Positions 4,630-53,027 of a DNA stretch of 64,000 bases are shown here, piece after piece. The stretch spans positions 1,612,001-1,676,000 of the forward strand of contig OU015568.1 of assembly GCA_907165135.1 (NCBI GenBank), written 5' to 3'. Source of the DNA: Oikopleura dioica (Eukaryota; Animalia; Chordata). The position numbers and the translations under genes were made by a program. The notes under the pieces are model-generated. The model had not been told where the DNA came from, ran no database searches, and saw nothing but the letters and a program-made list of their open reading frames with translations. Numbering within the stretch: the first letter of the stretch is position 1; every line of letters starts with the position of its first letter.

Positions 4630-5787
4630 CTTCATTTACCTAATCTTCTTTTTTATTAATTCGTCCTTAAAAAACCAATAAACGGCTGAAAATAGCGATC
4701 GACATTTATTCAATGGAAAAGTACAAAGAGAACTTTGAAGCATGTTATAGATAATTTTACCACCAACAAATATTGAACGATTTATATCGTTGTTTTTGCC
4801 TCTTGAAAATCGAATTTTTTGCTTCAAGATCATTTTCGTGGTCATTTGCTTTAGTTTTCTCGTAAGCGCGGTAAAGTAAATTATTTACAAAGCGACTTTG
4901 TCCAAAATAATCTGGTTTGAGGGAGGCGACGACATGGAAGAGGACTGAAAATTTCATTTTGATGAATGAATATGATATCGAGCCATTTATATGAAGCGAA
5001 TTTTAATATATTCAATGAGAAGAATCATTGATTTATAGAATCATCGAGCCATTGCTAATGAAAATTTCGAAATTAAAATAATCAGCCTTGTACTTATACG
5101 GCTATCTTTTAATATTGGCGTCATATCTGAGGATGCTAAGAAAAAATCCTGCATAAATTTTCCTCGATAAGTGCTAATTCTAATTTTAGTAGAAAAATGA
5201 CAGTAAATATTTCGAAAGTAAAATTTTTCTCCTGAGAAAGCCCCTGAAGCAATCAATTCAATCCTTTCGGCTCCTCATCAAGCTTTCCAAAATAACTCAA
5301 CAGAAGACGTTTCTGCGCTAGAATGAGTCTCACGGACTCTTTGCGCGTCATAAATCAAGCTTCGAAGTAGATCCATCGCACAGGAAGAGAATCTCTGCAG
5401 GAGACAGATCCCTCTTTTTGTTTCAAATGCTTCTTTCCAAAATATATGGATGAAGAAAGACTGAAAAGACTTAGAGCAGTGAGTATTCAGAGCTATTGCG
5501 AGAGACATCACTGGGATAGAAGACTAACAGGAATTTGGTTTTGAAACGACGCTGTTTTCAAAGCGAAAAGAACAAAAAATCAGCAAGAAACCATCAACTA
5601 AGCCACTGGAAATTTAAAAGCCGAGTACGAAAGGAATCTTCTCACCATTCCGAGCGTTTTTCACGACCCGTTTGTAAGGCCTTCTATTTGTTGGCTCCTT
5701 ACGAGGTATCACTCAATTTGCATTAAAACCTTGATCCCAGATTTCTAGCGTTTGTTTCCTGATTTCTATCTGTGCTTTGTTTTCCAG

Positions 5788-6119
5788 CCTGCAACTTTGG
5801 TCTCCAAACGAGACAAGAAAGATCGTCATTTCTTTTGAAAGAGATGATGACTCGACAAAGAAGAACATCTGGCTGTATCCTTATCTTATCGCTCTGCCAA
5901 TAGGACTCGGGTCTTTTCTAGCAAATACAATGTAAAGAAAAATACGAAAAGACCCATGGAAAAGTCTCGCTTGGAGTCTTTCTTTTCAGCATCATAATCT
6001 TCATCCGGGCGCTGAAGATGAGATCCTTTATTCAAGGCAAAATCCAGTACTACAATGCAATGATCAAAGTTGGCGAAGAATATCGTCCGTTTGGAGAAGA
6101 GATGAATCTCAAAATTTAA
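5788..6119 (+). CDS. Partial gene for a small single-pass membrane protein (5' end unresolved)
   Basis: Two exons joined by a GT-AG intron read LQLWSPNETRK..WLYPYLIALPIGLGSFLANTIIIIFIRALKMR..EEMNLKI*, with one hydrophobic segment followed by basic residues. Confidence 0.35.
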
Positions 6120-44357: not shown

Positions 44358-46506
<2,149 letters not shown>

Positions 46507-46984
46507 TTTCTTTCTTTCTTCAAGTTCCCTCTCTTCGATTAATACAAAAGCTCGTCTTGGAAAGAAAACAATAAAAAAGGTTTATGCTACTAGAAACAAA
46601 GCGTATTTTTGAGGTCAAGGTTTTTGGGCGTGTCAATAAGGAGCGTGCAAGGTGAGTCACATTTTGAAACAAGGGTGATAGAAATGCAAATGTTTGATTC
46701 TATCTAACGACAAAAGAACTCTTCCTCCGAAGAAACCCTTGAACCCTTAAATAAAACAATAGGAGAAAGTTGAAAATTCAGCAGTCCAAAATCCGTCTGC
46801 CAGAAGTCGCCATATAAATTTAATGTTATCGGGAGAAACATGACCGATTCAATTCCATTAAAACATGCCTCCTGTGGTTCTCCATTCTTCGCCTTTGCTT
46901 CATCGCTAGATGGCGAAACGCATATAAAAACGAAGAAGATACCTGACTGATTACTCAAGCAAAAGAAAAAGAAACAAGAAAAAC

Positions 46985-47205
46985 ATGAAAATTTTCAAAA
47001 CACTCAGCTTTACTGCTTTATTTGCTTCTTCTCACGCCGGTCCTCTTCAACTGTAAGTAACCAGGATTTATAGTTCTGTAATTCAGCTGTACCTTTTTCA
47101 AGGAGAAGCGAAAAACTCGGATATAGCGACGGAGGACTCATTTCAATCAACGGTTTTATGGATCAGTTCCGAAATGGAAACTATGGAGTCAAATTTGGCA
47201 AGTGA
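46985..47205 (+). CDS. Small secreted peptide precursor with a C-terminal amidation signal (2 exons; absent from the ORF track)
   Basis: Intron 47053-47102 (GTAAGT..TTCAAG). The spliced product is MKIFKTLSFTALFASSHAGPLQLRSEKLGYSDGGLISINGFMDQFRNGNYGVKFGK*. AATAAA lies downstream near 47265. Confidence 0.65.
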
Positions 47206-47365
47206 TTTACAACTCCAAACGTAATATAAAAGTATTTATCTGTGGTATGAATAATAACGAATGCAATAAAAAATCCATCATGAATTCGGTTGTTTTTTTT
47301 TATTATATAAAAATTTTGCCTAACAGCGAGTTATAAAAAAGTATCACAAGTGAAAAGGCTGATTC

Positions 47366-49164
47366 TCAGACCGCTTCAAAGAGCTCGATCTTCTGAACTG
47401 GCAACCATTTCTTCTTCTCGTATTGTTTCCATCCTTCAAGTGGAAGTTCGTGGGTCGACTTTGATTTGCAATAAACCCAACATGCTATAAATAAACCACA
47501 TGAGGAATAAAAGATAATGAATGAGTACCGTTCGAGCCCGTATCGGGCGAGATTTTCCACTTGTTTTTGTCGAAGAATAAAAAGATGTCTTGTCCTTTTT
47601 TCGACCTCTTGTAAACAGGCAGGCCATCAGAAGTAACATCGAAGAGTTTATATGAGCCTTGGATCATCTTGCTCTTCCACTTCGAGTAAAACTCCCCATG
47701 AAGCCGAATTTTTGTCAACCAGCCATCTAATTTCATTGACATCAATAATTGATCTCAATTCAAAACTTACCATTTTGAAGGATTTCGTTTTCGGGATCCT
47801 CTGTATCGGCTTCGGAAGGTCGTTTGAGCTTGAATTCAGATAGAGTCATCTCATCGCTCTCATTGCGTCTTTTAACGACCCGAGGTATTTCATTTTTATC
47901 TGCTTTGGATAATGAAAAGTTCTTCTTGATTGTTGAAGCTTCGAACTGACCGGGCTCCATTTTCTTCCGCGGAACTGATTGATCTCGGCGAATCGTCGTA
48001 ACGCCTTAATAAATTTTGCTACCGCTTGAGCCCTACTTCTATTAATTTACCAGAAAACTCAACGTCTTCTTTTTCACCCGGATTTTCAAATGAAACATTG
48101 GAATCATTTCTCAAAGTATTGTCGCGAGAATAGAGGCTCTGCGATAGCCGGCTTCGATCTACGGAAATCTTCCTAGCTTTCCTTGACTTTCGGAAATCTG
48201 ATCGTCGAGATAAAGTGTGGTTGAAACTGTTGTTGTACGATTGCTGCCGATTGAAGGATGTTTCCGGCTGAAAAAAAGGAGTCAGGAAAGGGGACCAAAC
48301 AGAGGATTTACCCGGTTGATTGATGTTTCCCTTTCGTCCTGAGCATCATTCTCGTCTTCTTTTTTGACATCGTTTTGGTCATTCTTTGATTCTTGGCCAT
48401 TGGTATAAATTGGCTCGTAATTTTCATATTTCTTCTTTAGCTCCAACAAACGAGCTCGATTCGCGAGGAACAGAATAATCTGCGCATCTGATCGACCTCG
48501 AGCGTGGAAAGGAAGGTCTTCATACAATTGCTGTCTATCAATTTGTTTCTAGAATCAAATCAGCTCCAATCTCACGACTAAATTACCTTTGGTTTCAGAT
48601 GATTTGGCTTGAGCCTGTTCAAAAATGCCATGTTCATTCGATATCTTTCAATTTGCTCTTGCGTTCTCCAAGTTTCATGCTTTCTCTCACTGTACTCTCC
48701 GGGAATGTAAATGTCGCCCGCCTTTCGTTTGTAATCATCATCTTCATCATCCGACATGACATTGTCTTCTGGGCCAAGTTCTTGTCCGACAGTGTTTTTC
48801 AAACTTTTTCCTTTCATCAGTTTCTGAAGAATCGTATTGTCCAATCTCATCCCTTTCTGGGGAGCTCCTGGAGCAACAGGCACCCCTCCCCCGCCGTTTC
48901 CGCTTGTTTGTTTCAACGCCAAGGTTTCTGTTTTTCCAAAACTAGATTCCTGTCCCCTCCATTTGTTCAACGCCGCATCGAGATCTTTTTTGTCCCCGTC
49001 AATTTTAACCGGCTGCCATCCTGCACCTTCTGTTTCATAAACACGAGGCTGGATGAAAACGGGCCCGGATGGGCGGTAGTCTTCGTCGTCTGAAGAATCG
49101 GTTGCCGTTGTATACTCCGAATCAGACAGACTTGATAGTTTTTTCTTAGATATTTTTCTTGCAT
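47366..49164 (-). CDS. Uncharacterised multi-exon gene(s): charged low-complexity region and a small C-terminal beta-rich domain
   Basis: Long open segments 48578-49090, 48282-48527, 47760-47990, and 47485-47745 (GSYKLFDVTSDGLPVYKRS..IFLFFDKNKWKI). The joins are not all resolved. Confidence 0.4.
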
Positions 49165-49854
49165 TTATGCTTACCTGATAAAAGCAGTAGGGCCCGGTGG
49201 GATAAAATCCGTCATTTTCAAATTATTTTTATTCTCTTGAGTCACCTTTGTTAGGGACTATTCTGGATACGAGCCCGACCTGATTGGGGGTAGTAAAATA
49301 TCAAGCCCCAAAGCATCATAAAAACCTACCACAACAAGAAATTAACCAGGTAAGATGGTAATATTGAAAATAGTAAGTGTATTTATAGTATAAATTTTAT
49401 ACCCTTACACAGGGTGCTGAAAGTAATATTGAAGACCATAAGTTTTTGCGAATCTCTTTTGGTAAATAATTACATGAAAGTTGGGGCTGACACTCATAAA
49501 TAACATAAATCTATTGTATTGATTAAAAGAAAAACCTTATTTTTACCGCCCATGTTCTTGGGCTTCGTTTCTTAACAAGAGGTAAACAGGGGATTACTAC
49601 CGTTGATACGATTCTATTCTATCAACTGTGTACCTGTGTGGATATAATATCAAGGATATTGAATTCAATCACAAAGCCTATCTTCCAAGCGCTGTATATG
49701 TATCCTCATCCAGCTGATCCAGCCCCGGTTGATCGGTTCGTGTTTCCATAGGCTGCAGAAAACGAAAGAGAGAGAGAGAGGAAAGAGCTAATGCTGAATT
49801 CTCTGGAGAAATTAATTTCTAAGAAGTCTTACGGTCAAGGCTCTTACTTTATTC

Positions 49855-52353: not shown

Positions 52354-53027
52354 ATGAAACTTTTTAGCATTTTTCTTTCCGGAATTCTCGCCGATCGACA
52401 ATGCGGAGATTACGCCTGCATTGAGGCGATGGAAACTGTAGGCTGCCTCGACACCTGCTACGAAGATGGCGACTGTTTCGGGACTCAAATGTATTGTTGC
52501 GGAAAATTAGCGGCCAACGATTGGGACGATCTGTTCAAGTTCCAGTCAGTTGTCCGAGCGGCTGGAGAAGCAATGCGAATCGATCATAATATTCTTGGAG
52601 CGATTATTTCTAGAGAGTCAAGAGCTGGAAGAAAGCTTGAGAGCTGGAATGGAGAGTATGGATGGGGAAAGTGCAGTGGCGGAAGTTGCTATGGATGGGG
52701 ACTAATGCAGGTGGATCGAAGATTTCATGAACCAAAAGGTGATTTCTAGAGATTTTTCGAATTAACGACAATCATTTTCTAGGCGCTTGGGATTCTCAAG
52801 AACACTTGGAGCAAGCCGCTCAAATTCTCATCGATCAAATCAACTGCATTTCCCGAAAATTCGACCGATGGACTCTTCCAATGAAAACCAAGGGTGGCAT
52901 TTGTGCCTACAGTGCTGGATGCGCTCACGTCCAGAATTATGACGGCATGGACATCGGAGCTGACGGAAATGATTATGCGAATGATTCTGTTTGCCGAGGG
53001 CAGTGGTTTAAAAACAGAGGATTTTGA
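52354..53027 (+). CDS. LYG: Goose-type lysozyme, secreted (2 exons)
   Basis: Signal peptide; GAIISRESRAG (catalytic Glu); GWGLMQVDRRFH.PKG|AWDSQEHLEQAAQIL; GGICAY; NDYAND..RGQWFK. Confidence 0.92.

Follow-up and report, generated by a model that had tools for sequence, protein, structure and literature searches.

A candidate two-exon mini-gene of Oikopleura dioica that may encode a secreted, C-terminally amidated peptide

Does a short piece of intergenic DNA on chromosome 1 of Oikopleura dioica, at 46985-47205 of the window (the whole 64,000-nt stretch analysed, to which all positions refer), hold a real gene, and what would that gene make? Peptide signalling in larvaceans is almost unexplored, and our literature search turned up no work on neuropeptides or amidated peptides in O. 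dioica. The initial annotation described at this locus a hidden precursor of 56 residues in two exons separated by a 50-nt intron. We analysed the candidate exon by exon, and both the coordinates and the reading proved exact (Table 1). The length follows from frame arithmetic (22 residues, one split Leu and 33 residues), and the C-terminus reads ...FR-NGNYGVKF-GK-TGA as proposed, with the stop ending at 47205. The splice junction at 47052/47103 corresponds to chr1 1,659,052/1,659,103. The transcription start was placed from the position of the TATA box.

Table 1. Features of the candidate gene, in window coordinates
Feature	Position	Strand	Description
TATAAA, candidate core promoter	46923..46928	+	62 nt 5' of the ATG
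Short A-rich 5' leader, predicted	46955..46984	+	start context AAAAAC-ATG-A, A at -3
Exon 1, coding part	46985..47052	+	22 codons + CT; phase-2 boundary
Signal-peptide-like segment	46985..47038	+	18 residues; the start is rich in Lys and leads into a hydrophobic core, with Ser-His-Ala before Gly-Pro
Intron	47053..47102	+	50 nt; GTAAGT donor; 3' end TTTTTCAAG
Exon 2	47103..47205	+	Leu codon completed, then 33 codons, TGA stop
Proposed octapeptide NGNYGVKF	47173..47196	+	preceding Arg at 47170-47172; cleavage there putative
Gly-Lys-stop	47197..47205	+	would signal C-terminal amidation, provided that the protein reaches the regulated secretory pathway
AATAAA poly(A) signal	47265..47270	+	60 nt 3' of the stop

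The intron matches the genome in length (50 nt, against a median of 49 bp in O. dioica OKI2018_I69; PMC8008620). Its GTAAGT donor belongs to the strongest class, and its AAG acceptor is preceded by a T-rich tract with pyrimidines at nine of ten positions. In a small, heuristically collected set of introns, A is as common as C or T at acceptor position -3 (10 of 34 introns, and 4 of the 12 with strong donors); A at this position is no handicap for the candidate acceptor in O. dioica. The adjoining AADAT gene has a probable AAG acceptor as well. The candidate acceptor is a tandem AAG/GAG, in which use of the second AG would cost a single Arg codon and keep the frame. The upstream CAG acceptor, which the initial annotation had named as a route to a different short product, would lead to one: it would give a 33-nt intron and a TAG stop after 13 codons.

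The sequence Phe-Gly-Lys-TGA occupies 47194-47205, and the reading of its Gly-Lys-stop as an amidation signal holds, with no plausible splice alternative that removes it. Among all late GT donors, which were enumerated exhaustively, each is weak and none opens a credible third exon. The donor that overlaps the stop codon (47202, GTGATT) requires an intron of at least 125 nt, and every candidate third exon runs antisense through the convergent gene. Models with a third exon and no Gly-Lys-stop were rejected for these reasons, and the Gly-Lys-stop therefore stands.

Two minus-strand genes flank the candidate, which is alone in the 860 bp that separate them. Its left neighbour is an AADAT-like aminotransferase (PF00155 on the largest exon), whose first codon, at 46506, was fixed by alignment to the full-length Oikopleura-like orthologue P0004; no AADAT coding exon was found further upstream of 46506, so that the gap is otherwise empty. 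P0004 itself has 418 aa on a contig of 1,319 nt and must therefore derive from spliced RNA. The second AADAT intron (46238-46143, minus strand) keeps the frame of P0004 only if it is read as non-canonical, GG...AG, about 96 nt long and ending in an AAG acceptor, which fits the 11% of introns that are non-canonical in OKI2018_I69 (PMC8008620). The right neighbour is a multi-exon orphan gene that runs on the minus strand from an ATG at 49214 to a stop at 47366. Its exons are acidic and Lys-rich, and none of four exon ORFs has a Pfam match. This gene and the candidate converge tail to tail, with 160 bp between their stop codons. Scans of 46400-47500 against Rfam and for repeats found no ncRNA and no transposon. 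Elsewhere in the window, an ATG-started exon at 52354-52749 (plus strand) encodes a clear signal peptide and a stretch rich in Cys, without a Pfam match at E<=1; it also carries a GLMQVD-type motif, reminiscent of goose-type lysozyme or lytic transglycosylases.

The OKI2018_I69 assembly comprises 64.3 Mbp in 19 scaffolds, the longest of 17.1 Mbp, and carries one gene per 3.7 kb (PMC8008620). At that density a gap of 860 bp is ordinary, and it could consist of non-coding intergenic or promoter DNA upstream of AADAT, in which AT-rich sequence brought the signals of a gene together by accident. The geometry of the signals argues otherwise: the TATA box stands at -62, the intron has the median length, the poly(A) signal stands at +60, and the candidate would end just before the 3' end of the convergent gene and that gene's own poly(A) signal.

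How often would such a structure arise by chance? We scanned both strands of the window for ATG-started two-exon frames of 45-150 residues with GT(A/G)AG donors, introns of 40-70 nt and pyrimidine-rich, non-GAG acceptors; 40 windows simulated with a first-order Markov model (Markov-1) served as the null. Two-exon ORFs with good sites are common even in simulated DNA (mean 10.1 per window, versus 26 in the real window), as an accidental origin would predict. A crude signal-peptide-like start reduces these numbers to a mean of 0.43 and to 2, respectively, and with a Gly-Lys/Arg-stop end in addition, only the candidate is left in the real window and nothing in the 40 simulated ones. Ends of the type Gly, one or two Lys/Arg, stop close about 0.5% of chance two-exon ORFs. 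Multiplication of the separate rates yields about 0.002 cases per window that combine splice sites, a signal-peptide-like start and such an end, or a few per genome. This rate by itself is not decisive, given a screen of about 1000 windows, which allows a few accidental cases of this kind.

TATAAA and AATAAA are signals beyond the original observation and were checked as predictions of the gene hypothesis. Across 264 kb of the O. dioica genome, TATAAA is found 40-85 nt upstream of 2.6% of ATGs, AATAAA has a base rate of 9.6% at ATGs, and the two occur jointly at 0.5%. They are correlated in AT-rich DNA, which makes their coincidence easier to obtain by accident; nevertheless, the joint expectation of all features comes to only about 1e-5 to 1e-4 per window. 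The full filter (splice sites, signal-peptide-like start, TATA box and poly(A) signal) retains two models in the 264 kb and none in the control, the same 264 kb reversed without complementing, and this too speaks against a chance frame. The other model that passes the filter is an 85-residue, Cys-rich secreted mini-protein in two exons on the minus strand (chr1:2200001-2210000, at 5713-6021; L037). Its TATAAA and AATAAA are rightly placed, and it looks genuine. Codon usage does not discriminate between coding and chance for the candidate: with +1.3 bits it ranks at the 26th percentile when set against real coding segments, and among the highest 13% when set against short open frames, a neutral result that leaves room for an accidental ORF.

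Relatives of the candidate were sought in several collections. Searches of the O. dioica genome itself with the DNA and with the exon-2 peptide matched only the locus and thus revealed no paralogue. In a word-index protein search with the natural 43-aa open frame at 47074-47202, no protein of 24-75 aa shared three 5-mers. A 305-residue ORF of the window is present in the same collection with NCBI as its source, so that the public annotation of this genome was covered by the search; by this measure the candidate is absent from the OKI2018_I69 annotation, in which a longer model containing the exon is still possible. That annotation was made by AUGUSTUS with RNA-seq hints (PMC8008620). The candidate exons gave no match in Pfam (E<=1), NCBIfam or PDB sequences, and the ESM Atlas returned nothing beyond noise (best score 0.87, to phage hypotheticals).

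A HMMER search with the neighbouring AADAT exon recovered Oikopleura-like AADAT proteins (P0001-P0005) at 65-90% identity on ENA, Logan and JGI contigs of up to 2.7 kb, which means that these collections contain sequence from other larvacean lineages or species. Because JGI holds such AADAT-bearing contigs, its contigs were scanned with degenerate patterns for the end of the candidate. The last ten residues, NGNYGVKFGK, had 0 matches. The last eight, NYGVKFGK, had 18, none with a stop behind it or a similar sequence before it, and we attribute these to chance. The lack of relatives in every collection searched (own genome, word index, Pfam, NCBIfam, PDB, Atlas and JGI patterns) and the absence from an RNA-seq-guided annotation are what a chance ORF would show. 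Weighing these points against the joint rarity and the placement of the signals, we consider it probable that a real gene exists at this locus; a chance ORF is a possible explanation, though not the one we favour.

If the gene is real, is its product secreted and amidated? By a crude heuristic the N-terminus looks like a signal peptide: Lys is found at positions 2 and 5, the first 18 residues contain no acidic residue, and the best 9-residue hydropathy is about 1.6. By this measure the core is only moderately hydrophobic, and the step from Ser-His-Ala to Gly-Pro is a plausible signal-peptidase site. The candidate exons encode no dibasic site. A moderate core and monobasic sites alone weigh against an amidated-peptide precursor. 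For cleavage at a monobasic site, a further basic residue at P4, P6 or P8 is usually required. At the Phe-Arg/Asn site these positions hold Asp, Phe and Asn, none of them basic; Arg-Ser-Glu-Lys/Leu alone among the basic sites has such a residue, an Arg at P4, and cleavage there would yield a Phe-amide of 29 residues. The initial annotation had proposed NGNYGVKFamide or an N-extended form as the product. The octapeptide fared poorly because its Arg lacks the usual upstream basic residue, and we regard this specific product as very unlikely; an N-extended Phe-amide of 29-36 residues is at least as likely. Within that range, the uncleaved 36-residue propeptide and the 29-residue amide appear equally possible.

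A precursor that ends in Gly-Lys is classically processed by a carboxypeptidase and then by an amidating monooxygenase. In the O. dioica genome, PF03712 (Cu2_monoox_C, of PHM/DBH type, with PHM and DBH-like paralogues not separated) is found at 3 loci and PF01483 (the proprotein-convertase P-domain) at at least 6 loci; judged by these domains, the genome encodes processing machinery of this type (PHM-like and proprotein-convertase-like).

The same gene signals would be seen if the locus encoded a small secreted protein other than an amidated signalling peptide, such as a constitutively secreted epithelial, house-associated or defence peptide, with a Gly-Lys end that is incidental or amidated for stability only. 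The missing dibasic cleavage sites fit such a protein, as does the composition counted from the translation, which is rich in Gly, Asn and aromatic residues, free of Cys and unlike any hormone family. However, an incidental end of this type is expected in only about 0.5% of random ORFs, a net charge of about +1 to +2 without amphipathic design makes a poor antimicrobial candidate, and the Cys residues or repeats typical of structural proteins are missing. We consider this alternative unlikely.

The reading we prefer, with a probability of about 0.4, is a real gene with a secreted, C-terminally amidated peptide product. According to this reading, transcription of an unannotated two-exon O. dioica mini-gene would begin about 30 nt past the TATA box (46923), splicing would remove the intron of 50 nt and the mRNA would end beyond the AATAAA at 47265. 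Translation would produce a 56-residue prepropeptide, whose first 18 residues would route it to the ER and be cut off after Ser-His-Ala. A carboxypeptidase would then take off the terminal Lys, and peptidylglycine alpha-amidating monooxygenase would turn the exposed Gly into a Phe-amide. The mature N-terminus could be that of the whole 36-residue propeptide, of the 29-residue form after Arg-Ser-Glu-Lys or, with the least support, of the octapeptide after Phe-Arg. What we show is the anatomy of the locus and its rarity by chance; we infer that the locus is transcribed, that its product is secreted, processed and amidated, and that it may have a signalling role. The candidate is a plausible orphan peptide precursor.

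A real gene at this locus would mean that a chordate whose genome is drastically reduced has one more orphan amidated peptide, and would indicate that RNA-seq-guided annotation overlooks genes this small. The combination of signal peptide, median intron, TATA box and poly(A) signal selects only two models in 264 kb, which makes genome-wide use of the filter possible. The impact would be modest, as a tunicate that evolves so fast can be expected to have orphan peptides. A more far-reaching version, in which the candidate is a larvacean-specific, uncatalogued amidated signalling peptide with a new ...YGVKF-amide pharmacophore that acts on an orphan O. dioica GPCR and comes from a gene that, at about 310 nt between the TATA-predicted start and the poly(A) site, would rank among the smallest animal hormone genes, seems to us rather improbable.

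How does the candidate compare with known peptide families? As initially surmised, none fits: the word-index search, Pfam, PDB and NCBIfam all gave no match. CGRP has 37 residues and a C-terminal ...G-x-K-(x)-F-amide, and its family is defined by an N-terminal Cys-Cys ring. The 36-residue propeptide of the candidate resembles CGRP in length and in its C-terminal end, but its exons encode no Cys and hence no N-terminal disulfide ring. Kinship with calcitonin, CGRP and amylin (CGRP/DH31-like) was rejected on this ground and on the lack of a Pfam match at E<=1 and of a matching PDB chain; we treat the resemblance to the CGRP C-terminus as chance. With RFamide and FMRFamide-like peptides the candidate shares a basic residue followed by Phe-amide, derived from a Gly-basic signal, yet its C-terminus would be Lys-Phe-NH2 rather than Arg-Phe-NH2, its precursor contains only one copy and none of the family models gave a match. 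The RFamide signature is thus missing, as the initial annotation had it, and so is the tachykinin FxGLM-NH2 motif.

The closest parallels come from Ciona, where tunicate lineage-specific neuropeptides without relatives elsewhere are documented (PMC6475428), and the orphan status of the candidate is for that reason no argument against it. O. dioica is reported to have GPCRs that presumably belong to the LF-receptor clade (PMC6475428). The candidate has no sequence similarity to Ciona Ci-LF, Ci-YFV/L or Ci-NTLP. What it shares with them is the type: small secreted tunicate precursors without relatives outside the lineage, in which the aromatic residue at the C-terminus is important. Leu-Phe is the ending of Ci-LF peptides, which are present in multiple copies between basic sites, whereas the candidate ends in Val-Lys-Phe-Gly-Lys and has one copy; peptidomics revealed the Ciona peptides, which lie between clear cleavage sites, whereas the candidate is known from its sequence and has monobasic sites only. 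If real, the candidate would be an orphan among the small precursors of amidated secretory peptides, a kind that is well known.
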